From assembly GCF_006345805.1 (NCBI RefSeq), contig NC_042999.1:136214001-136278000 (forward strand): a DNA stretch of 64,000 bases. Reading direction: 5' to 3'. How positions within the stretch are numbered: position 1 is the stretch's first letter; the number at the start of each line of letters is the position of its first letter. The position numbers and the translations under genes are program-made. Below the pieces are notes generated by a model. That model saw only the letters and a program-made list of their open reading frames with translations. It searched no databases and had not been told where the DNA came from. Positions 1-48,749 of this stretch are shown here, piece after piece. Origin of the DNA: Octopus sinensis (lineage: Eukaryota).

Positions 1-385
1 GAGTGGCTGTGTGGTAAGTAGCTTGCTAACCAGCCACATGGTTCCGGGTTCAGTCCCACTGCGTGGCATCTTGGGCAAGTGTCTTCTGCTATAGCCTCGG
101 GCCGACCAATGCCTTGTGAGTGGATTTGGCAGACGGAAACTGAAAGAAGCCTGTCGTATATATGTATATATATATATATGTGTGTGTCTGTGTTTGTCCC
201 CCTAGCATTACTTAACAACCGATGCTGGTGTGTTTACGTCCCCGTCACTTAGCGGTTCGGCAAAAGAGACTGATAGAATAAGTACTGGGCTTACAAAGAA
301 TAAGTCCCGGGGTCGATTTGCTCGACTAAAGGCGGTGCTCCAGCATGGCCACAGTCAAATGACTGAAACAAGTAAAAGAGAGTAT
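1..385 (+). mobile_element. tRNA-derived SINE family A (head, internal (TA)/(TG) microsatellite, 3' module)
   Basis: Head GAGTGGCTGTGTGGTAAG...GGTTCAGTCCCAC with A/B-box-like motifs, CTTGGGCAAGT (CORE-like), then a (TA)/(TG) run, then a 3' module ending ACTGAAACAAGTAAAAGAG. Near-identical copy at 55925-56300. Resembles octopus OR-type SINEs (recalled, not searched). Confidence 0.85.
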
Positions 386-419
386 ACACATATATACACA
401 CATAAACAAATATAGAGAT

Positions 420-571
420 ATATGCACACATTTATATATATATATGTGTGTGTGTGTGCGTATGTATGTATATATATATATGTGTGTGTGTATATATATA
501 TGTATGTATGCATGTATGTATATATATATGTGTGTGTGGTTGTGTGTATATATATATATATATATATATTA

Positions 572-603
<32 letters not shown>

Positions 604-661
604 GTGTGTGTGTATATATATCATCATCATCATTATCATTTAGCGTCCGCTTTCCATGCTA

Positions 662-728
<67 letters not shown>

Positions 729-765
729 TGAGGGAATATTATTCCAAACTTAGAGGGAAAAATTC
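420..765. repeat. Compound microsatellite (TA)n/(TG)n/(CAT)n/(TAA)n enclosing a tiny RTE-tail remnant (~620-662)
   Basis: Directly visible. TCATTTAGCGTCCGCTTTCCATGCTAGCA is the reverse complement of the RTE 3' end at 6661-6700. Confidence 0.9.
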
Positions 766-959
766 AATTTAAAAATACTAAATCAAAATTTTACATAATA
801 TAATATATATATATATTAAAAAAAACCCACCCTTTATCAATCCAATAATGAAAAATTAAATTATATCATTTAGAAAAATTACCGATTATAGAAAGATTAA
901 ATATGAGGTAAAATATATAACGATGATTAAGTAATGTGCACATATATACATATATATAC

Positions 960-1009
<50 letters not shown>

Positions 1010-1171
1010 ATATATATATACACACACACACACACACATATATATGCATAAAGTGCACACACATATATAAACACATACACACCCATACATACATATACAT
1101 CTACATATGTTTGCATATGCATATATGTATATAAATACATATACACATGTACTCATAGACACATGCACACA

Positions 1172-2457
1172 TACGAGGGGCGTAATGCCCCTGACCCACT
1201 TCCCATAGCAGTAGAGCAACGAAACTTGGCACAGTTATTAGTCTTTTTCTACATAGGAACCACCCAGAGTTACGCATTTCTCCCATCGTTTGATGCGGCT
1301 CTGGAGACCGTTTTTGTAGAAGAACCCAGCTTGGTCCTCCAACCTCAACATGACTTCAGAAATCAAGGCTGCATCATCTGGGAAACGTTTTCCATTCAAA
1401 AACAACTTCATGATTGGGAAGAGGTGAAAATCAGAGGGTGCAAGGTCAGGAAAGTAGGGGGGATGGGGAGGAGTTCATAGCCATATGCCTGTGCTTCTGA
1501 TCTGGCGACAAGTGAGTTGTGGACCGGAGCGTTGTCCTGCAGGAGGAGGATGCCTTTGCTGATCTTGCCCCGCCTCTTGATTTTGATAACTTCTCTTAAT
1601 TTCCTCAAAAGTGAAGCATAATAGGCTCCTGCAATTGTGGTACCCTTTGCCAGGAAATCTGTCATCACTACTCCGTCCTGATCCCAGAAGACTGTGAGCA
1701 TGACCTTGTCAGCGGAGGGCTGCACCCTTGCCTTCTTTGGAGGGGATGAGTCACGGTGCTTCCTCTGCATTGACTGGGCTTTGGTCTCTGGATCATCGTG
1801 ATGGACCCAGGTTTCATCCTGTGTAATCAGTCTTTTGAAAAATTTTGACTCATCTTCTTGGCACATCTCCAAATTCACCCTCGAGCACTCGACGCGTTCT
1901 TGCTTCTGGAAAGGCGTGAGCAGCCTGGGAATCCATCTGGCAGACACCTTTTGCATATGCAAATGGTCATGAATGATAGTTTCCACAGACCCGGTACTAA
2001 TCTTGACCTCATGGGCTATTTGGTGAATAATTATGCGTCGATCTTCCAAAATGTCAGCCTCAACTTGACAGACAGATGCCTCATCAATCGCAGAAGGGGG
2101 CAACCAGATCTGGGAGCTGTTTCCACAGAGTTCCGACCATGTTTGAATTCACGATGCCAGCGTTTTACAAGGTCATATGATGGGGTATCATCACCATAAG
2201 TTACTTTCATTTCATCAAAAGTCTCCTGTGGTGTGCGTCCTTTCAAATACAAAAACCGGATCACTGCTCGACACTCAACAGGCTCCATTTCACACTTGAC
2301 TCGGTTCAAACACCTGTAAATCAGAGACCACAATTAATTCAGAGCTGTAATTTGCCACTTACTCTATAGAGATATAAATGATTGCACATGCAAAATTTCA
2401 GCTAGATCAAACAACTGCAAGTGGGTCAGAGGCATTACTTATTGAACGTCCCTCGTA
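1172..2457 (-). mobile_element. Mariner DNA transposon (DD34D), near full length, non-functional
   Basis: TA-flanked TIRs: TACGAGGGGCGTAATGCCCCTGACCCAC (left, short internal deletion) and GTGGGTCAGAGGCATTACTTATTGAACGTCCCTCGTA (right). Transposase on the minus strand. Confidence 0.95.
1238..2288 (-). pseudogene. Mariner transposase pseudogene (~350 codons, two frameshifts near 2105 and 1470)
   Basis: MEPVECRAVIRFLYLKG... N-terminus, WIPRLL (WVPHEL equivalent), TQDETW, LLQDNAPVH, and after a frameshift PHPPYFPDLAPSDFHLF. There are 34 residues between the 2nd and 3rd Asp. Confidence 0.93.
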
Positions 2458-2491
2458 TACATATGAATATATATTCTTCTGTTTTTTTACA

Positions 2492-2700
2492 CCTTTTACT
2501 TGTTTCAGTCATTTGACTGCAGCCATGCCTTGAAGGGTTTTAGTTGAACAAACCAACCTCAGACTTTATTTTATTTACTTTTTTTTAAGTCAAGTACTCA
2601 TTCTATCGATCTCCTTTGCTGGGGATGTAAACACACCAACACCAGTTGTCAAGTGGTGATAGAGGAACAAACACAGACACAAAGACACACACTCATAGAT
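2492..2700 (-). mobile_element. SINE family A 3' module
   Basis: Reverse complement of the 180-385 module, degraded. Confidence 0.75.
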
Positions 2701-2715
2701 ACATACATACATACA

Positions 2716-2751
<36 letters not shown>

Positions 2752-2756
2752 TTTAT

Positions 2757-3562
2757 ATATAGGTGAGAAAGTTGGTGTGTGAAAGCACATGGTTGAATAT
2801 ATAGAAAATAGTAAAAAGTGAAAAAACTACAGAAGGCTTGTTTTAAAAGGTTAAAAAATATATATTTGAGTCATTATATCAGAAGAATGTTCTTTTTTTT
2901 TTTTTTTTTTTTTCATACAGTGACATAGTTTTTGAAGAAATTGTAGTTTTATCCGAGGTATTAGTCTTCTGTGGCATTTTCGGTCTCATGTGTTTGAATT
3001 TATAGAAAATAGTAAAAAGTGAAAAAACTACAGAAGGCTTGTTTTAAAAGGTTAAAAATATATATATTTGAGTTTATGTCAGAAGAATGTTATAAATTTT
3101 TTTTTTTTTTTTCATACAGTGACATAGTTTTTGAAGAAATTGTACTTTTATCCAAGGTATTAGTCTTCTGTGGCATTTTCGGTCTCACGTGTTTTATATA
3201 TAGGTGAGAAAGTTGGTGTGTGAAAATTTATAACATTCTTCTGACATAATGACTCAAATATATATTTTTTAACCTTTTAAAACAAGCCTTCTGTAGTTTT
3301 TTCACTTTTTACTATTTTCTATATATTCAACCACGTGCTTTCACACACCAACTTTCTCACCTATATATAAAACACGTGAGACCGAAAATGCCACAGAAGA
3401 CTAATACCTCGGATAAAACTACAATTTCTTCAAAAACTATGTCACTGTATGAAACCCCCCCCCCCAAAAAAAAACATTCTTCTGACATAATGACTCAAAT
3501 ATATATTTTTTAACCTTTTAAAACAAGCCTTCTGTAGTTTTTTCACTTTTTACTATTTTCTA
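2757..3562. repeat. Inverted array of ~100-250 bp units related to the Penelope-like 3' terminus
   Basis: GAAAATAGTAAAAAGTGAAAAAACTACAGAAGGC starts at ~2804 and ~3004 on +, and its reverse complement ends at ~3320 and ~3560. The same motif forms the 3' end of the Penelope element at ~29070. Confidence 0.8.
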
Positions 3563-3585
3563 TATATATATATATATATATTATT

Positions 3586-3776
3586 TCGAACAAATCGTTA
3601 ACGAAGCTGTTCATTATGACCTTGGGTTTGTTGGATATTCCAGTATTGGGATGGACCTGTTTCATAACCTTATGGATGTAGTTCAAACAGCTTTCCTTTC
3701 TCTTTACTTTCTTGCTTTTCGATCCGGCTAAATTTGGCTTGATGGATTTCTTGAGATTTTCACTGTCTGACATCAT
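3586..3776 (-). pseudogene. H2B: Histone H2B-like pseudogene, 5' half (inverted)
   Basis: [64 protein letters not shown] aligns to canonical [40 protein letters not shown]. Confidence 0.9.
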
Positions 3777-3845
3777 CTACGATCACTGCAAACTCAACAA
3801 AAGCTTAGCTGATCTCAGTGAGAAGGTTCCCCAGGCCTGGGGAAC

Positions 3846-3942
3846 CTTTGTTAACGATTTGTTCGAGAGAATTGCTGTCGAAGCCAGTCGTTTGGCTCAC
3901 TACAACAGATGTTTGACCATCAATAGACAAGAAATTCAAACT
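3846..3942 (+). pseudogene. H2B: Histone H2B-like pseudogene, 3' part (truncated after EIQT)
   Basis: [32 protein letters not shown] aligns to canonical [32 protein letters not shown]. The C-terminal helix and stem-loop are absent. Confidence 0.9.
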
Positions 3943-3961
3943 ATAGATATATATATATATA

Positions 3962-6705
3962 TGGGTAGATAAAGTAATTGAGGTAATCAGAGTATGCGAC
4001 AGAATACTTAAGATTAGATTAGCGCTTCATCATAGTTTAGCAACCATTATATCAGCCTATGCTCCTCAGTCGGGGCTACCTGATGGACAGAAAGACCGAT
4101 TCTATGACACTCTACTGCAGACTACCTCGTTGACGAACGACAGAGACCTTCTCTTTGTGGCTGGTGACTTCAATGGTCACGTTAGACGACATGCTGGGGG
4201 CTTCCATGGCGTACATGGAGGCTATGGCTCTGGTTCCCACAACGAGGAGGGAACCAGGCTGCTGGAGTTCTGTGATGCAAATAATCTTATGATTTGCAAC
4301 ACTAACTTCAGGAAACCTACCAGCCATCTAGTCACCTACCGATCGGGCCAACATACCAGCCAAATTGACTACATCCTAGCCAGGCAAAGGGAGAGATGGC
4401 TACTTATAAATGCCAAAACCTTCCCAGGCGAAGAATGTACCCCACAACATAGACTGGTAGTTAGTGACTTTAGGATCAGGAGTAGGAGGACAACCAGAAG
4501 ACGACCAACATGGAGAAGAAGGATCTGGAAGCTTAAGGATCCTGTGAATGGACAGAGATTTAGAGACATGTTACTTGAAGCCTGTGACGAAGTAGAAGGG
4601 GATAGAGTATCACATGGGGTAGAGGACAACTGGACGTTTCTAAGGGACAACCTGCTGAGAGCCACTAACCAGATCTGTGGCTGGTGCAAAGTCCCCTCTC
4701 GTCCCAAGGTAACGTAGCGGTGGAACAGTGTCGTAGACAGGGCTATTAGAGAAAAGAGACAGACTTGGAAGCACTGGAAGAATGGTGGTAGCAGGAATTG
4801 TATCAGACTGCTAAAAGGGAAGCTAGGAGACAGGTCTATCTAGCCAGAGGGGAAGCAGATAAGAAAAAATTTGCCAATGTTCTGCACCGTGAGGACCAAA
4901 GACTGGAGGTGTTTCGCGTTGCAAGACAGTGTGTGAGAGAGAATTGTGATGTGGTGGGAGAGAAGTGTGTTCGCATGGAAGATGGCTCACTTGCGCTAAA
5001 CGAGGATGCAAAGAGAGAGGCTTGGAGACGCCACTATGAAAGGTTGCTGAATAAAGAAAATGAATGGGATAAAGAGAGTCTGCCGAACGTTGACCCAACA
5101 GAGGGACCAGCTATCAGGGTTGATAGTTCCTTAGTAGCTAAGGCAATTAGAAGCATGAAGACAGGGAAAGCCCCAGGCCCATCAGGTATCACTGCAGAGA
5201 TGCTCAAAATATCTGGTAGTGTCGGCTATTAGCCTAGTCACCTGTATAGTTAATCAGGTGATACATGAAGGAGTCATACCCAATGACTGGTGTGGCAGCA
5301 TAATAGTCAACTGCTACAAAGGTAAAGGTGATGCCCTAGATACAAATAATTACAGAGGTATCAAGCTGTTGGATCAGGTGATGAAGGTTACAGAGAGGGT
5401 CATAAGCCAACTAATTAGAGAGAGAGTTAGTTTAGATGAGATGCAGTTTGGTTTCGTGCCAGGGAAAAGTACCACCAGGCAGCTGCAGGAGAAATACCTA
5501 GCCAAAGATAAGCCCCTGTACCTGGCTTTTGTTGACATGGAGAAAGCCTTCGACAGGGTCCCCCGATCCCTCATATGGTGGTCAATGAGGAAACTAGGAA
5601 TAGATGAATGGTTAGTGAGAGCTGTGCAAGCCATGTACAGGGACGCTGCTAGTAAGGTGAGGGTTGGCAATGAGTACAGTGAAGAATTCAAAGTAGAGGT
5701 AGGGGTCCACCAAGGCTCAGTCCTCAGCCCCCTCCTATTTATCATAGTCCTCCAGGCAATAATGGAGGAATTCAAGACAGGATGCCCCTGGGAGCTCCTC
5801 TATGCTGATGACCTTGCTCTAATTGCTGAGTCATTATCAGAACTGGAGAAGAAGTTTCAGGTGTGGAAGCATGGTTTAGAATCAAAGGGCCTTAGAGTCA
5901 ACCTAGCTAAAACCAAAGTCCTAATAAGTAGGAAGGTAGACAAATCACAAACGCCTTCAGATAGATGGCCCTGCTCGATCTGTAGAAAAGGTGTAGGTAG
6001 AAACTCTATAAGATGCACCAAGTGTAAGCTATGGACACATAAGAGGTGCAGCAATGTCATAGGAGGCTGTCAGCTTCGTCTGGCACCCGTGCCGGTGATA
6101 CGTAAAAGCACCATTCGCTCGTGGCCGTTTGCCAGCTCTGCCTGGCCCCCGTGTCGGTGGCACGTAAAAGCACCATCCATTCGTGTTCGTTGCCAGCCTC
6201 GCCTGGCCCTGTGCCGGTGACACGTAAAAGCACCGTCTGTTCATGGCCGTTTGCCAGCTCTGTCTGGCCCCGTGTCGGTGGCACGTAAAAGCACCATCCG
6301 TTCGTGTCCGTTGCCAGCCTCGGCTGGCCCCCGTGCCGGTGACACATAAAAGCACCGTCCGTTCGTGGCCGTTTGCCAGCTCTGTCTGGCAACCGTGTCG
6401 GTGGCACGTAAAAGCACCATCCGTTCGCGTCCGTTGCCAGCCTCGGCTGGCCCCCGTGCCGGTGACACGTAAAAGCACCATCCGTTCGTGGCCGTTCGCC
6501 AGCTCTGTCTGGCACCAGTGCAGGTGGCACGTAAAAAACACCCACTACACTCGCGGAGTGGTTGGCGTTAGGAAGGGCATCCAGCCGTAGAAACACTGCC
6601 AGATCTGACTGGGCCTGACGAAGCCTTCCAGCTTCACAGACCCCAGTTGACCCGTCCAACCCATGCTAGCATGGAAAGCGGACGCTAAATGATGATGATG
6701 ATGAT
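3962..6705 (+). mobile_element. RTE-clade LINE, 5'-truncated within the APE domain, internally deleted after ~6065, with 3' UTR and (GAT)n tail
   Basis: Frame from 3962 reads [20 protein letters not shown]...IISAYAPQ...AGDFNGHV...SQIDYIL (APE). RT motifs GKAPGPSGI, NYRGIKLL, QFGFVPG, AFVDMEKAFDRV, GVHQGSVLSPLLF, LLYADDL. Stop at 4715, frameshifts at ~4795 and ~5228. Tail CCATGCTAGCATGGAAAGCGGACGCTAAAT(GAT)n. Confidence 0.95.
6070..6545 (+). repeat. GC-rich ~61-bp tandem array (8 units, alternating A/B) in the RTE 3' UTR
   Basis: Units of the form CCGTTCGTG..GCCAGC..CTGGC..GTG(T/C)CGGTG(G/A)CACGTAAAAGCACC are directly visible. Confidence 0.9.
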
Positions 6706-6734
6706 ATATAAATATATACACACATATATAGATA

Positions 6735-6880
6735 TACAGTTTCTGTCTATCATATCCACTCGCAAGGCCTTGGTCTGCCTGAAACTAGTAGAAGACACTT
6801 GACCAAGGTGCCAAGAATTGGAACTGAACCCAAAAAGATGTGGTTGAGAAGCAAGCTTCTTACCACACACCCACACCTGC
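6735..6880 (-). mobile_element. SINE family A head
   Basis: Degraded reverse complement of 1-150. Confidence 0.75.
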
Positions 6881-6924
6881 ATGTTTTGTCTCACATGTTA
6901 ATGATTCTGTTAGCTTGCAAACTT

Positions 6925-7524
6925 AACAAGCCTACTATAGGTGCAAAACCTGGAATTTTGTGAAAGGAGATAGTCAATTACATCAACCCCAGTACTCAAT
7001 TGGTACTTCTTTTATGAACCTTGAAAGGATGAAACGTAAAGTTGATCTTGGCGGCATTTGAACTCAGAACATAAAGGTGGGCAAAATCAGTGTGCTAACG
7101 ATTCTACTAACTAGCTCTCCACCTTAGTTAATCTTTTCTTCTATAGGCACAAGTCGACCACAGCAGAATTTGAACTCAGAATGTAGCAATGGATAAAATG
7201 CCGCTAAGCATTTCATCTAGTATGCTAATGATTCTGCCAGCTCACTACCTTAGCGATGATAATAATAATAATAATAATATAATAATAATAATAATAATAT
7301 AATAATAATAATCCTTTCTACTATAGGCACAAGGCCTGAAATGTGGAGGGAGGGGTTAAGTTGATTACATCGACCCCAGTACTCAACTGGTACTTAATTT
7401 ATCAACCCTGAAAGGATGAAAAGCAAAGTTGACTTCAGTGGAATTTGAACTCAGAATGTAAAGATGGATGAAATGCCTCTATGCATTTTGCTCAGCACAG
7501 TAACAATTCTACCAACTCACCACC

Positions 7525-7567
<43 letters not shown>

Positions 7568-7870
7568 TAATCTTTTCTACTATAGGCACAAGACCTGAAA
7601 TTGTGGTGGTGGGGGCTTGTTGATTACATTGACTCCAGTGATCAACTGGTACTTATTTTATCAATCTCAAAAGGATGAAAGGCAAAGTCAACCTCAATGG
7701 AATTTGAATTCAGAACATAAGAATAGACATTTTGCCACCAAGCATTTTGCCTGGCATGGTAATGGTTCTACCAACTCGTCTTTCTTAATAATAATAATCA
7801 TAATAATATTTTCTAATATAGGCACAACGCCTGAAATTTGGGGGGAGGGGTCTAGTCATTCTCATAGACC
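6925..7870 (-). mobile_element. Cluster of 4-5 tandem tRNA-derived SINE family B copies separated by (AAT)n
   Basis: Repeated CTTTCTACTATAGGCACAAGGCCTGAAAT...GGATGAAAGGCAAAGT...GAATTTGAACTCAGAA...CTGCCAGCTCAC, the reverse of the copy at 20108. Confidence 0.85.
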
Positions 7871-7874
7871 CCAG

Positions 7875-8099
7875 CTTTTGAGCAGGATGGGCTACCCGAC
7901 CAGAAGAAAATTCTAACTGGGTCCCACCTGCAAGGTCATGCGCTGTTTATCTTGATATGAGATCACCATATTGTGCACATATGGTTGTGATGCATGTACC
8001 TGGTGTACCCTTATCATGACGGGTAGTCACGATGGGTTGACTGGGCTTCGTATATTTTACCCCAGTGTCACTTTGATGGCATGCACTGCTCTCTCATTC

Positions 8100-8150
<51 letters not shown>
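7875..8150 (+). mobile_element. 5'-truncated copy of (AAT)n-tailed retroposon family F
   Basis: Matches the 3' part of 44115-44700 and ends CTGCTCTCTCATTC(AAT)n. Confidence 0.8.
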
Positions 8151-8154
<4 letters not shown>

Positions 8155-8652
8155 GCTTCAAATTTTGGCACAAGGCCAGTCATTTTATGAGAGCAGGTTT
8201 AGATGATTGCATCAACTTCAGTATTCAACAGGTATTTATTTTATCAATCTCTTAACCTCAGCAGAAGTGACTCAGAATGTAAAGAGCATTAAAAAATAGA
8301 AATGAATGTCACAAAACATTTTTGTCCATCCATGCTAACAATTTATGGTGGATTACATCTTTTTGTTTGGACAGGCAACCAAATATACACCATGAAATTA
8401 TTAACTCCATACACACACACACATACACATACATGCATACATACATACATACATACATACATACATACATACATACATACATACATACATACATACATAA
8501 GTACGTACGTACATACATACACATCAAGATTGTTTAATGGAAGCATTTTGAATATGCATTTAAAAGCTCCTATTCCTTTATGCTGGCTACAACTTAATGA
8601 TACCAGTTTTTTTATGTTGCACCGAGCTGTGCTAATATAATGTACAATAAAT

Positions 8653-8683
<31 letters not shown>

Positions 8684-9044
8684 TGATCCTTGGATGGAAT
8701 TTATAAACATTTAATGCTTTACGATGCATTTAATTTTTATAAATTCTATCCAAGGATTATTGTTATTATTATTATTATTACTAGCTGGACCTGTGAAAAC
8801 TTCATGATAAACATAAAAAATGTGAACATTTGTAAACTGTGTGCTGGTGCCATGAGAAATGTTTCTATATTGTGACAGTTGCAGAATATAGAAAGATGTT
8901 TAAAACCGCTAACTATATTATCCATCCAAAATATCTCAGTTATGCAAACATAAACAGAATTACAATTTAGCCTTAAAATACATCGTACTTATTCAAAGAA
9001 CCTTCTTGGTTTAGTGGTATGGCACGTTCTTCTGGTATTCTTTT

Positions 9045-9230
9045 ATTCTTTTACTTGCTTCATTCATTTAACTGTGGCCATGCTGGACCACTGCCCTTTA
9101 GTCGAAGAAATCAACCCTTGGACTTATTCCCTGTAAGCATGGTACTTATTGTATCAGTCTCTTCTGCTGAACAGCTAAGTTATGGGGATACAAACACACC
9201 AACATCAGTTGTCAAGCGATGGTGGTGGTA

Positions 9231-9282
<52 letters not shown>

Positions 9283-9400
9283 ACAAACACACACACACAC
9301 ACATACATACATATATGATGGGCTTCTTTCCGTTTCTGTCTATGAAATCCACTCACGAGGCTTTGGTCAGGCTGAGGAAAAAGTAGAAGACACACTTTAA
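9045..9400 (-). mobile_element. SINE family A with internal (CA)n
   Basis: Reverse-complement 3' module, (CA)n, and a truncated head. Confidence 0.75.
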
Positions 9401-9889
9401 AGTACAGAGTTGAATTTCATGTAGCCATCTGCTGACAACTTTTGTAGGGGGTATTACCCATTTTACTTGGCTCTTTTCACAGCTATACCCTGTTCGAAAT
9501 TTGCATTAGTTTTTATATATATATATAAAAAAAAAGCGAGTGGGACTTGTTTGTAGTTTGTAGAGGAAACATTAAACATGCCTGAAAAAAAAAATGGTTT
9601 TTCCCACCAACTGAAAGACATGAAGAACTATGAAAGAAGGTGAATAAGTACCGGGGGTGAGGGGAAAGAAGAGAGAACTAACAGTCGATCATTTTAGAAG
9701 TCCTAGAATGAAAACGTAAACACCTGAAAGACTTTCTCTCCATTCATTACTAAATGTCTTTCCATCTTCTTCATTGTTAAAAGTAAAGGTGCTAGAAAAG
9801 ATCGATCGTATTTCAGGCCAGTTTTCATTTTAAGTGACTGGAGCTTTCCTGTCTCTATCACTTCACTCCTACGGTTAAGAAAGTGAAAG

Positions 9890-10208
9890 TGTGTGTGGCA
9901 CATTGGTTAAGGGTATTTGGCTTATGATCATAAAGTCATGGGTATGATTCCCGGTGGCTTGCTGTGTTATTGAGCAAGGTACTGTACTTCTCTTTGCTGC
10001 AGTTCACTCAGCTGGCAAAAATGAGTCATAGCTGTAATTTAAAGGGGCCAGCCTTGTCACATTCTCTGTGAGGCTGAATCCCCCTGAGAACTATGTTATG
10101 GTATGCATGTCTGTGGAGTACTCAGCCACTTGCGTGTTAATTTTATGAGCAGACTCTCCCGTTGATCACATAAACAGGAACCTCATTGTCGTAAGTGATG
10201 GAGTGCCA
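9890..10208 (+). mobile_element. tRNA-derived SINE family D (partial second copy at ~10535-10680)
   Basis: tRNA-like head TGGTTAAGGG...GATTCCC, TTGAGCAAGG, CAGCCTTGTCACA, GTCTGTGGAGTACTCAGCCACTTGC. Homologues at 28415-28790(-), 37935-38160, 39197-39445 and 62085-62215. Confidence 0.75.
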
Positions 10209-11535
10209 TTTTAAAAAAAGTGTGAAAGAAAAGGAAATGTTCCATATCGTAAGGCAAAAATGTCATGTGTTAAGTATAAGCAGTGAAAGCTAAGACGAAA
10301 TAATTGCTATTCTGTCATGTAGTGACTTCACCCTGGACTCAAGCTCAGTTTGACTACAACAGCCTGCACATTGGTGTTTATTTGGGGGCTTGACCTCCAG
10401 ATCTGAGAGACCCACAAATGCTGCTGTTAGGACTGGATTAACACCTATAGTGACCCTAACGACTAAAAAGCTTTTCCTGCCCCTATATAGGCTCCTTTTT
10501 CATTTTCTTCCAACTATTTGAAGGTTTATCTTGCTCCAGTCCACTCAGCTGGCCAAAATGCGTTGTAGCTGTAATTGAAAGGGGCTAGCCTTGTCATATT
10601 CTGTGCGAGGCTGAATCTCCCTGAGAAGTACGTTAATGGTATGCATGTCTGTGGAGTACTCAGCTACTTGTGAGTTAATTTTTATCCTCATGTGGTAATG
10701 AAAAGTGAAAGTGACATCTAATATATGCTGTAGTTATTTGTCTTTGATTTAACAATGTGTCTGTATCTATGTATCAACTTTTCTTTTGATCTATGTATCT
10801 ACTGTCTCTCTCACTTTCTCTATTTCTCACTCACTTCCCCTGTGTTTCTCCTCTCCCCCACTTTTAATTAACAATTTATGTATGTATCTATGTATCTACC
10901 TTTGTTTCGATGTATGCATCAGTTTAACTGTAGAAAAGTAACAGTAACATCCACAACTACTTGCTGAGAGACAGAGAGAGTGTGTTAAAGAGAGAGGGCA
11001 GACAGATAGATAGATAGGCAACATTACTTTTTGCAATTATATATTGGCTTTATCATATATCATCGAAAACGGAAAGTTTTCCAGTGTTTTCACTATTATC
11101 CTCTATCTACCCCCTTCCTTCACTCATCTATCTCTCTAAATCTCTCTCTTTTTCCTCCTCCCTCCTCTATGTCTCCTTGCCTCTAACTGTCCTCCTGTGT
11201 TTAACATGTTATATTTCTTGCTTTTAATGTTATATTTTTCTTACCTCTCAGCACTCTATCAATCTTCCACCCTCTCTCTCTCTCTTTCTCTTTCACTCCC
11301 TTTTACTTTCTCCTCTTTCTTGCTTAGCCTCTCACTATACTTCCTCTGCTTCTGTCCTTCTCCTCTCTCCCGCTTGATACCTTTTATTTCTCTTTTTCTT
11401 TGTACCGCTCCCTTCAACCTTTTTACCTCTTCCTTTGAAGTAAGTGTGACACACACCACAGGTACAGGCAAAAACAAACAAAACTAAATATATTAATATT
11501 ATTGATTTTAATATTATTGATTTTATTATTATAAT

Positions 11536-11585
<50 letters not shown>

Positions 11586-12494
11586 CGGTAGAATCAACAT
11601 AAAAACAATACTCCAATCAGTGAGAGATAAATATCAATTTAATACATTATCATGAATGAGCTACTAATAGTTTCATGCTTTTATGATATTCTAAATTGGC
11701 AGATTTATTAAACATGCCACGTATCTCCAAGCAATCTTTCAGGCTCTGTTCATGTGTTAGATTTATTTTAGAATAAGTTCACATGTTCACTATTTGAGTA
11801 ACAAACCTCAAATTACTTTCAACTTACTCTTAAACAGAATTAATCAATACAAGATGAATAAAACTCGATTATTTTTAAATAAATCTAATGATTGAACAGA
11901 ATCTGCAAGATTGCATGCAGATAAATGGTGTTTTATAAATCTGCAAATTTAAAGTATTGTAAAAGCATGAAACTAACTATTAGTAGCTCTTTGTAATTGT
12001 GCATTAAATTGATATGCATGCATGTCTGTATGTATGTATGTATGTGTGCATGTAAGTATGTATGTAGATGTGCATGTGATAATATATATGTGTGTGTGAA
12101 TATATGTATATATGTGTACATATAGATACAAACACACACACACACACACATACACACATATGTTTTAAATTTGTTTATGAGAAATGTTGTGGATATACAA
12201 ATAAATCTCCTGTTCCATTATGCCAGCTACAGTCTAATGATGCTGATGGGTGAACCAGTTTTGGGTGGCTGCACTGAGTTGTGCCAATACAACCTTCAGT
12301 TAAACACCCATTAATTCAATATCGCCTGAACAAATGAATCCATGAAGATGATCTACCCAATGCTAACAGATACGATGGACTACACTGTAATCATCCCAGG
12401 AATATGGACTGTGACCTTAAGAGACATGATTTGTGGAAATGCACATAGTAATGCATTAAAATAAATTCCATCCAAAGATTATTGTCATCATGAT

Positions 12495-24515: not shown

Positions 24516-24521
<6 letters not shown>

Positions 24522-24820
24522 CTTAGAAAGCACCATCCGAATGTGGCCGATGCCAGCGCTACCTGGTTGGTGTCCGTGTCAGAGACACATAAAAAGCACA
24601 AACCAATCGTGGCCGTTTGCCAGCTTCCTCTGGCCCCTGTGCCAGTGACACATAAAAAGCACCCACTACACTCACAGAGTGGTTGGCGTTGGGAAGGGCA
24701 TCTAGCTGTAGAAACACTGCCAGATCAGACTGGAGCCTGGTGCAGCCTCCTGGCTTCCCAGACCCCAGTCGAACCATCCAACCCATGCTAGCATGGAAAA
24801 CAGACGTATGATGATGATGA
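24516..24820 (+). mobile_element. RTE 3'-tail insertion with 2-3 UTR repeat units, in (TA)n
   Basis: Homology to 6400-6705, with a (GAT)n tail. Confidence 0.85.
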
Positions 24821-24830
24821 TATATATATA

Positions 24831-29069: not shown

Positions 29070-29071
<2 letters not shown>

Positions 29072-30482
29072 AAAATAGTAAAGAGTGAAAAAACGACAGA
29101 AGGCTTAAATGTTAAAAAATATATATATTTGTGTCAAAATGTCTGGAGAATATTGGAAAAATTTTTTTTCCTTTCCTTAAAATGACATAATTTCATAATT
29201 TTTAAAGAAATACCGGTTTCGCGTGTAGCTTTTCAAATTTCTTGTGACGTTATGTTTATATTGCATGGAGTTATCATTGTGTTTATTTTCAGGAGATTTC
29301 TAAATAAGGGGAGGTAGTGAGTGATTTCTTCCGGTGTAAGGGAGATAATCGCTTAAAAATTTTTTTCCTTTCCCTTGTTAATTTCTCTGTGTCAGTATGT
29401 TCGGATGGTTGAGTCTGGGTTTGTACTTTTCAATGAAGAATGTTTCCTTGTTCAGTCTCATTTGTGTTGATGATCCGAAAGCACATTGGTAAAATGGGAA
29501 GATTAAAAATTGTGGCAGTAGTTGCTTTGCGCATTTCTCAATGTGTTCACTAAAAGGTATCATTCTATATTCTGGGAATGCAATCTGTTGTCGATGCAGT
29601 GTGCATCTACGCCTGAGTGATAGTCCCGTGGAACCCACGTAGTCTTGGTGGCAGCCCGAGCATTTAATGACATAAATTATGTTTTCAGAGGCACAAGTAA
29701 AGTTAGATTTGATCTTGAATTTCTGTCCCTCTTTAAAGAAGAATTCTGATCCTTCCAATAGGTTAGGACATGTTGCACAGTTCGATCTACCACATTTTTT
29801 TACTTTTGCATCCGTAATTTCAGAAGACAATTTTGCCTTTGTGAGAATCTTTTTAAGTGATTTAGGCTGTTTGTAGCTTTTAATGATTTGGTGTATGTTT
29901 AGAATTTCCTTTAATTTTGGGTTTTTATGAAGTATTGGTAAATTCTGGGTGATGATGGTGAAGGCTTCTTTGTTTCTGGGGTTGTATGTAGATATGTAAG
30001 GTAGTATTTTCGGGGAAGGTGTGTTGTTGTGTTGAACTTTTCTTAAAGTTTCTATGTTGATTTCTGTTGCACGTCTGATCCCATCCTCTATGAGTTGAGC
30101 TGGGTAATGTCTGTCAATTAGGGTGTTTTTGAGTTCTTGCAGTCTAAAGTTCCTGGTATTTTGTTCTGACACTATTGTGCATATCCTTCTTGCAAGGTTG
30201 AAGGGGATGTTTGTTTTAGTGTGTCTTGGGTGGCATGAATTAAAAAGAAGGTATTGTTTGGCGTCTGTGGCTTTGTAAAAAATGTCTGTTTCTATTTTAA
30301 GGTTAATTTTTTTAATTAGTATATCCAAGAACGGGAGCTCCTTTTGGTTGTATTCCATTGTGAACTGTATATTTGGGTTTATGCTGTTCAATAGGTTTTT
30401 AAATTTTAGGAGTTTATCTATGTTTTCATTCCAGAGAATGAAACAATCGTCTAGGAATCGTTTCCAATTCTCTTTTATGTTT
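29070..30482 (-). mobile_element. Penelope-like retroelement (Neptune-type), 5'-truncated, 3' end at (TA)n
   Basis: RT motif WKRFLDDCFILW, IQFTMEY, LPFLDILI, RHTKTNIPFNLARR. Cys linker KKCGRSNCATC. GIY-YIG NIIYVIKCSGCHQDYVGSTG...RCTLH. Confidence 0.93.
29378..30482 (-). CDS. Penelope RT C-terminus plus GIY-YIG endonuclease, uninterrupted partial frame
   Basis: ORF 29378-30391 stays open upstream through FLDD to the truncation point. Confidence 0.85.
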
Positions 30483-33954: not shown

Positions 33955-34224
33955 GTTGCCTGGCCCCATGCCGGTGGCACATAAAAAGCACCATCCGTCT
34001 GTGGCCGTTTGCCAGCTCCGTCTGGCACCTGCGTGGGTGGCACGTAAAAAGCACCCACTACACTCACGGAGTGGTTGGCATTAGGAAGGGCATCCAGCCG
34101 TAGAAACACTGCCAGATCAGACTGGGCCTGATGCAGCCTTCTGGCTTCACAGACCCCAGATGAACCGTCCAACCCATGCTAGCATGGAAAGCGGATGCTA
34201 AATGATGATGTTGATGATGATGAT
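33955..34224 (+). mobile_element. RTE 3'-tail insertion with ~2 UTR repeat units, after (TA)n
   Basis: Close match to 6430-6705. Confidence 0.88.
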
Positions 34225-48256: not shown

Positions 48257-48710
48257 TCATCATCATCATCATCATCATTTAACGTCCGCTTTCCATGCTA
48301 GCATGGGTTGGACGGTTCAACTGGGGTCTGGGGAGCCCGAAAGTTGCACCAGTCCAGTCAGATCTGGCAGTGTTTCTACAGCTGGATGCCCTTCCTAACG
48401 CCAACCACTCCGAGAGTGTAGTGGGTGATTTTATGTGCCAACGACACAGGTGCCAGACGAGGCTGGCAAACGGCCACGCTCGGATGGTGTTTTTTATGTG
48501 CCACCGACACAGGTGCCAGACGAGGCTGGCAGACGGCCACGCTCGGATGTGTGTTTTTAGTGCCACCGACAGGTGCCAGATGAGGCTGGCAAACGGCCAC
48601 ATCGGATGGTGTTTGTTACGTGCCCACAGCACAGAGGCCAGTCGATGCGGTACTGGCTACGGCCACGTTCGGATGGTTTTCTTGTGTGCCACGTGCCACC
48701 GGCACTGGTA
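48257..48710 (-). mobile_element. Younger RTE 3'-tail insertion with 4-5 ~60-bp UTR units
   Basis: Reverse complement of the 6070-6705 type sequence. Confidence 0.88.
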
Positions 48711-48749
48711 CCACAAAGATACAAATTCCATTGATGTTCATATATTATA

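Follow-up and report, generated by a model that had tools for sequence, protein, structure and literature searches.

How could a single histone H2B copy come to lie as two halves that point in opposite directions and meet at a perfect palindrome? This is the question raised by positions 3586 to 3942 of the DNA analyzed here, a 64-kb stretch from Octopus sinensis that we call the window and whose coordinates we use throughout. What looks to be novel at this locus is a twin-priming-like, LINE-associated inverted retrocopy that lies beside an RTE element, stems from a tail-less histone gene and carries a palindromic junction. The reading that we prefer, at a confidence slightly short of even, is that the two ends of a broken (TA)n tract, of the kind targeted by the RTE, each primed a cDNA on an H2B transcript and that these two cDNAs were joined head to head where the template had its 5' end. 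The features of the locus, from left to right, are as follows.

2752-3567, unstranded: left-flank mosaic, a ~200-241-bp unit in direct and inverted copies, ending in CTATATAT at the (TA)n tract
3561-3585, unstranded: left (TA)n tract and then ATTATT, the outer junction of the inverted half
3586-3773, minus strand: H2B-variant coding sequence from the parental ATG (3773) to FVNDLFE, from tblastn and alignment to the parental-type gene
3774-3816, minus strand: leader, 43 nt homologous to the region 5' of the parental ATG, ~14 nt of the 43 lying upstream of the predicted cap motif CATTCG
3817-3835, minus strand: leader extension of 19 nt, CCTGGGGAACCTTCTCACT, whose outer 13 nt are the left palindrome arm
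3823-3848, unstranded: perfect 26-bp palindrome centered at 3835/3836, its last 3 nt (CTT) common with H2B sequence
3846-3942, plus strand: H2B-variant coding sequence from FVNDLFE to EIQT, parental positions +174 to +270, the first 21 nt being an inverted duplicate of 3586-3606
3943-3960, unstranded: spacer of 18 nt, ATAG(AT)7, between H2B and the RTE
3961-6705, plus strand: RTE-like non-LTR retrotransposon, 5'-truncated and degenerate, with RT domain, 61/123-bp array (6071-6536) and (TGA)n tail
6706-6740, unstranded: TA-rich right flank past the RTE tail, ATATAAATATATACACACATATATAGATATACAG

The split H2B copy and its parental genes

A canonical H2B query, run by tblastn against the whole 64 kb, matches at the two halves only, and the rejoined protein matches the Pfam family Histone (PF00125) with E=6e-11. 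The left half, read on the minus strand from 3776 to 3586, translates to the N-terminal part of H2B and ends in NSFVNDLFE; the right half, on the plus strand at 3846-3942, translates to the part from FVNDLFE to EIQT. Both halves lie where the initial annotation had put them, with one correction: the ATG at 3776 is a GAAG-to-GATG mutation, and the parental ATG is at 3773. Aligned to a parental-type gene of O. sinensis, the left half corresponds to 9958-10200 of locus L001 with 86% nucleotide identity and the right half to 10174-10270 with 89.7%. The same alignment bears out the 21-nt stretch that had been noticed in both halves (L001 10174-10194), whose two copies differ by one CpG-to-TpG change.

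Canonical octopus H2B is more distant from the window copy than is a variant H2B of octopuses. Proteins annotated as "late histone H2B.L4-like" have the same N-terminal tail and histone fold, with 77% amino acid identity for XP_029632951.1 of O. sinensis and 80% for A0A0L8H502 of O. bimaculoides, each over 99% of the query; unlike them, the window copy is split, truncated at EIQT and a pseudogene fragment. A 13-residue stretch of the window copy is common to the O. bimaculoides variants and not to those of O. sinensis or O. vulgaris; taken with the best match of the neighboring RTE, this suggests an O. bimaculoides-like source. The comparisons make the copy a decayed piece of an H2B variant that is specific to octopuses and has a distinctive tail at its N terminus. 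As a separate observation, the O. bimaculoides model A0A0L8H5L6 (UniRef), of 64 residues, stops at NSFVNDLF, the same codon at which the inverted half ends; this may be a coincidence, an assembly gap or a recurrent breakpoint.

Five functional paralogues are invariant at 276 sites, and at 29 of these (10.5%) the window copy has a private change, 8 of the 29 being at CpG; conserved residues have also been substituted (Y to C, Y to H and D to N). It is because of these private changes and substitutions that we regard the copy as a pseudogene fragment. Its truncation at EIQT falls ~90 nt before the stop codon and ~115 nt before the stem-loop of the parental-type genes.

The parental-type genes with which we compared the copy are those of the O. 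sinensis cluster (four paralogues on CM016860.1; loci L001 and L002) and of the O. vulgaris cluster (locus L004); for the O. bimaculoides models A0A0L8H502, A0A0L8H5A0 and A0A0L8H5L6, no record with DNA was found. The genes compared are intronless and carry a histone 3' stem-loop (Rfam RF00032, E=8e-9), and their transcripts are therefore expected to lack poly(A), as had been assumed from the start. With no introns in the parent, their loss cannot serve to test for retroposition. In two paralogues, a TATAAA box lies ~60 nt 5' of the ATG. All functional paralogues become alignable from a CATTCG motif ~33 nt 5' of the ATG, as seen in the three functional O. sinensis paralogues (L001 9950-10000; L002 9850-9893 and 20370-20414), and 5' of the motif one paralogue (B) has wholly different sequence. 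CATTCG, the classical histone cap-site consensus, is the predicted cap site, and the divergent upstream sequence of paralogue B fits this prediction.

Both clusters include degenerate paralogues, and the window copy could on that account be thought a rearranged resident member of a histone gene cluster that decayed in place. We consider this a most improbable origin. No other histone sequence was found in the 64-kb window, the window as a whole was compared with L001 and L002 of O. sinensis and resembles them in repeats only, and homology to the parental genes stops 43 nt before the ATG on one side and inside the coding sequence on the other. A search of window positions 1-12000 for Rfam families found none.

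The palindromic junction and the origin of the insert

The inner junction is an exact palindrome, AAGGTTCCCCAGG/CCTGGGGAACCTT, with the 26-bp length and the CTT handover first described for it, and it is the longest perfect palindrome in the window apart from those made of A and T. None of 100 Markov-2 simulations reached a 13-nt palindrome arm, and we therefore do not attribute it to chance. The CTT at 3846-3848 belongs to both the palindrome and the H2B sequence, possibly as part of a longer, imperfect guide, GAAC..CTT.

The sequence that points inward from the left half had been taken as a leader of the H2B message. This is borne out for the 43 nt before the ATG, up to window position 3816, which are homologous to the parental upstream region and include GAGATCAGCTAA, ~14 nt upstream of the predicted cap site. 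It does not hold for the last 19 nt, CCTGGGGAACCTTCTCACT, a source for which was sought in the window, in the parental upstream and TATA regions and in loci L001-L004, and was found in none of them. We also considered whether the palindrome could have pre-existed in the parent's leader; this is possible, but for 26 bp to lie exactly at the junction by chance is very unlikely.

How the two halves came to be joined can be explained in several ways. First, and in our preferred reading, reverse transcription proceeded from two ends. The sequence itself shows the anatomy of the locus, the parental family, the RTE next door and the association of its family with (TA)n; for the H2B insert, we infer an RNA intermediate and the following order of events. 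One cDNA, the bottom strand, would have been primed from the right-hand DNA end and have copied the transcript leftwards from the codons for EIQT. The other, the top strand, would have been primed from the left-hand DNA end near FVNDLFE and have copied to the 5' end of the transcript. If the same 13 nucleotides at the end of the template were the last to be copied into both cDNAs, and the cDNAs were then connected end to end, either through blunt joining or because the reverse transcriptase made an end-to-end template jump, a perfect palindrome without a spacer would result. Non-LTR reverse transcriptases are known to make such end-to-end jumps. Most of the right arm, from leader position 14 to codon ~58, would then have been lost, either through a template switch during synthesis guided by CTT (possibly by GAAC..CTT) or through a later deletion that stabilized the palindrome. 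If the palindrome marks run-off at the template end, the parental transcript would begin at CCTGGGGAACC.

Several observations speak for copying from two ends. The two template segments are in opposite orientation, and the 3'-most base of the inverted 5' segment lies at the flank; homology to the parent stops, on its 5' side, no more than ~14 nt from the predicted cap site; all sequence in the dispersed copy comes from the transcribed part of the gene or from close to it; and the RTE is 18 nt away, in the same orientation as the direct H2B half. The twin-priming geometry seen by the initial annotation is thus present, with inverted 5' and direct 3' segments at opposite flanks, a duplication and a microhomology. 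Its further statement that an mRNA had been retroposed goes beyond what the locus offers: the parent is intronless, the copy lacks a tail, no positive mark of an RNA intermediate is present, and no unique repeat can be recognized as a target-site duplication where both flanks are TA-rich and of low complexity. The direct segment ends inside the coding sequence and not at the 3' end of the RNA, and a 3' end with a tail, as twin priming leaves, is found only if one assigns the RTE and its (TGA)n tail to the same insertion. The leader also exceeds the predicted cap site by ~14 nt and then continues for 19 unmatched nt, and the preferred reading therefore needs an unseen parent with a longer, different leader.

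Two details of the earlier account fare less well. A short foldback had been invoked at the inner junction; a foldback with zero loop is sterically implausible, and head-to-head joining fits the palindrome better. The left flank had also been said to mimic the continuation of the mRNA. It does so at four of six positions, but the context consists of A and T only and the match is weak (roughly p~0.06). We found no convincing complementarity between primer and template at either of the outer junctions.

Second, the insert may have originated at the level of DNA. A strand broken or stalled in the fragile (TA)n tract would have copied DNA of an H2B gene through microhomology-guided switches (MMBIR/FoSTeS or templated-insertion repair), or such switches would have rearranged an older, simple H2B fragment, and the same process would have built the mosaic on the left. 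We regard this as the main rival and a serious one, somewhat less probable than the preferred reading. The mosaic, which sits between a (CATA)n tract and the (TA)n tract, is a patchwork in which an AT-rich unit recurs in tandem, direct and inverted, with 96-100% identity between the copies: 3473-3567 equals 3232-3326 (100%), and 3232-3371 equals the reverse complement of 2752-2891 (98.6%). An AAA microhomology lies at its inversion junction, 3225/3226, and the last copy of the unit breaks off in its internal TATATAT, where the (TA)n tract starts. Near-identical inverted and direct duplications with such a junction show that template switching at the DNA level has acted recently at the same spot. 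The continuation of the interrupted unit (TCAACCACGTGC...), sought downstream of the RTE as a test for an empty site or target-site duplication, is absent there. A diverged relative of the unit lies at 29070-29193.

A DNA-level origin is also consistent with the CTT microhomology at the inner junction, with parental homology that reaches upstream of the predicted cap site, and with a missing tail and an unreadable target-site duplication. The age of the duplicated stretches points the same way. They differ at 1 of 34 positions (3 of 40 on a wider reading), compared with private changes at 29 of 276 sites, which would suggest a young rearrangement of old sequence. Because the duplicates are far more alike than the private divergence predicts, this weak test suggests a source that had degenerated beforehand or a rearrangement later than the decay; the comparison with overall decay gives p~0.03 on one reading and ~0.12 on another and is too fragile to decide. 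Against a DNA-level origin, fold-back priming leaves a loop and would hardly yield a palindrome without a spacer. The segments taken from the donor end before the TATA box and include no clear non-transcribed flank; the copy has neither this box nor downstream gene flank. The DNA-level account also gives no reason why the center of symmetry should lie at the 5' end of the gene. Moreover, templated repair insertions of ~350 bp from distant loci are rarer than LINE-mediated copies.

Third, the junction could be an artifact of assembly or reading, for example if two unrelated H2B pseudogene fragments had been brought together by a chimeric or palindromic read. Adapters missed in long-read libraries can give palindromic junctions, and a search with the window ORFs of 86 and 77 residues found no independent assembly of the junction on record. 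But the inverted overlap measures only 21+13 nt, whereas an inverted duplicate of this kind would be as long as a read, the halves complement each other as parts of one gene and have decayed similarly, and a CpG transition separates the overlap copies, as expected of real, aged DNA. An artifact is accordingly very improbable. We also tried capture by a Helitron and rejected it: the copy lacks a CTRR end at 3942 and a hairpin close to its 3' end, and TC is preceded by T, where insertion between A and T would call for an A.

The neighboring RTE element and its (TA)n tracts

Both outer ends of the H2B structure lie in (TA)n, as originally reported, with tracts at 3561-3581 and 3947-3962; tracts of (TA)n with n of at least 6 make up only 2.8% of the 64-kb window. 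The annotation had proposed RTE or Penelope machinery without noticing the element next door, and its guess of an RTE is strengthened by that element, which starts 18 nt to the right of H2B, is truncated, and belongs to a family enriched at (TA)n. Homology to an O. bimaculoides copy runs from 3961, at about residue 104 of the endonuclease. Between 3961 and 6705 the Pfam domains Exo_endo_phos_2 and RVT_1 follow in that order, in a reading frame broken by at least one stop and one frameshift; the element ends in (TGA)n at 6705, with TA-rich DNA beyond and no poly(A). Its closest relatives are annotated "craniofacial development protein 2-like," a name used for genes derived from BovB/RTE. With an AP-type endonuclease, a reverse transcriptase and a short-repeat tail, the element is RTE-like in its sequence features.

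In the family defined by the RTE tail, four of the seven window copies have (TA)n at the 5' junction (4 of 15 when fetched loci are included), and a random position lies at (TA)n in 4.7% of cases. Comparison of four in seven with this background associates the family with (TA)n targets. The four copies, each with (TA)8-25 at the 5' junction, lie at 615-665 on the minus strand and at 3961-6705, 24517-24828 and 33960-34218 on the plus strand. Two of them also have a run of (TA)n, with n of at least 4, after the (GAT)n tail, where 3961-6705 is TA-rich. This distribution suggests that the family prefers (TA)n as a target and leaves more of the tract on its 5' side.

A further possibility, which is a version of our preferred reading, is that H2B and RTE were inserted in one chimeric event. 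Reverse transcriptase would have copied RTE RNA from the (TGA)n tail to 3961 and switched through the (TA) spacer to H2B RNA, and priming from the opposite DNA end would have used this H2B RNA as well. The direct piece of H2B and the RTE are colinear on the plus strand, 18 nt apart, and the AT that starts RTE homology (ATGG, 3961) continues the (AT)n spacer and leaves the 5' breakpoint ambiguous by 2 nt, as at a microhomology junction. Chimeras at 5'-truncated L1 elements provide a precedent, those with sense cellular RNAs being attributed to template switching and those with antisense RNAs to twin priming (PMC13174262). Nevertheless, the 18-nt spacer resembles the ordinary 5' target tract of the family (8-25 repeats in three other copies), so that the RTE would seem to be a complete insertion in itself. 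The acceptor site lies within the coding sequence of H2B and not at the 3' end of the RNA, and chance adjacency would not be rare, given about one RTE-tail copy per 9 kb and the (TA)n preference. Taken by itself, a single chimeric event seems improbable.

Within the preferred reading of two-ended reverse transcription, we lean modestly, given the likeness of the spacer to the family's usual 5' target tract, toward two insertions into one target tract by the same machinery over one chimeric event. In the most specific form of this reading, a cephalopod reverse transcriptase of the RTE clade would have started from the two ends of a break in its (TA)n target and copied a histone mRNA that had a stem-loop and no tail, and the palindrome would be the in vivo footprint of an end-to-end template jump that connected two run-off cDNAs at the 5' end of the RNA. 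In this full form the proposal is tentative, and we think it unlikely on balance. RTE-type elements are believed to recognize their own 3' ends, and processed pseudogenes are not known among their products, which speaks against the preferred reading. In its favor, RTE-clade LINEs are the candidates for active LINEs in Octopus (PMC9115989).

Other repeats of the window and of the fetched loci are recorded here in their own right. The 61/123-bp tandem array inside the 3' part of the RTE (6071-6536) recurs in other copies, for example at 48424-48713 and at L002 7862-8263, as well as in short SINE-like elements that share the RTE tail. One such element, at L002 7790-8470 and L004 7860-8480, is flanked by a direct repeat of ~35 nt, cactatttcaacaaaaacatatcaatattattctt, which implies that RTE-mobilized elements of Octopus can make long target-site duplications. 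Between 6900 and 8200 runs a series of SINE-like repeats, each after (AAT)n or (ATA)n and containing ...CTATAGGCACAAGGCCTGAAAT..., a pair of which forms a 259-bp tandem at 7269-7808. A mariner-type transposase ORF occupies 1408-2103 on the minus strand (Pfam Transposase_1, E=1e-21); its relatives are dispersed family members, at most 92% identical, in short contigs of sequencing-run assemblies. A 337-residue ORF at 29378-30391 on the minus strand has a weak, sub-threshold match to the SIR2 family (E=1e-3) and is not a recognizable transposable-element protein.

Implications and comparison with known systems

Nearly all known cases of twin priming and of chimeras between LINEs and cellular RNAs come from mammalian L1, an element that works on poly(A) tails. 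If the specific RTE form of the preferred reading is true, both would extend beyond mammalian L1 and to non-polyadenylated templates. Its confirmation would have several consequences. First, an element of the RTE type, for all its supposed strictness about its own 3' end, could copy a tail-less histone mRNA. Second, priming from two ends would be a general property of target-primed reverse transcription. Third, head-to-head junctions could mark the 5' end of a template. Finally, the locus would bear on the scattering of gene fragments in cephalopod genomes. If the DNA-level account is true instead, the locus is another (TA)n-associated rearrangement, of little wider interest.

Three known systems offer analogies. 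Templated insertions of the MMBIR/FoSTeS type (PMC4215184) likewise consist of several short segments that come from one small donor region in both orientations, with a microhomology junction, a structure-prone repeat at the site and neighboring DNA that is similarly patchworked. Here, in contrast, the donor is a distant gene, the segments are confined, or nearly so, to its transcribed part, and the palindrome has no spacer.

In chimeric L1 insertions (U6/L1 and mRNA/L1; PMC13174262, PMC6789731), as at this locus, a piece of cellular RNA lies 5' of a 5'-truncated LINE, a sense piece fitting a template switch and an antisense piece fitting priming from the opposite end. The octopus locus differs in its 18-nt (TA) spacer between H2B and the LINE, in the presence of the same cellular RNA in both orientations, and in an acceptor point that is internal and not at the 3' end of the RNA; a target-site duplication for the whole structure is unreadable.

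The third system is L1 itself, whose 5'-inverted insertions were reportedly explained by twin priming by Ostertag and Kazazian in 2001 (cited in PMC13174262). The differences are several. The H2B part has neither poly(A) nor an element tail, and its 3' end lies inside the coding sequence; the target here is (TA)n and that of L1 is TT/AAAA; the candidate machinery is a cephalopod element of the RTE clade; and the junction is a perfect 26-bp palindrome, a 13-nt inverted repeat not being typical of L1 inversions. The likeness lies in the architecture. As in twin priming by L1, the 5' part of the template is inverted at one flank and the 3' part is direct, and a short duplication (here 21 nt) and a microhomology (here CTT) accompany the inversion junction.
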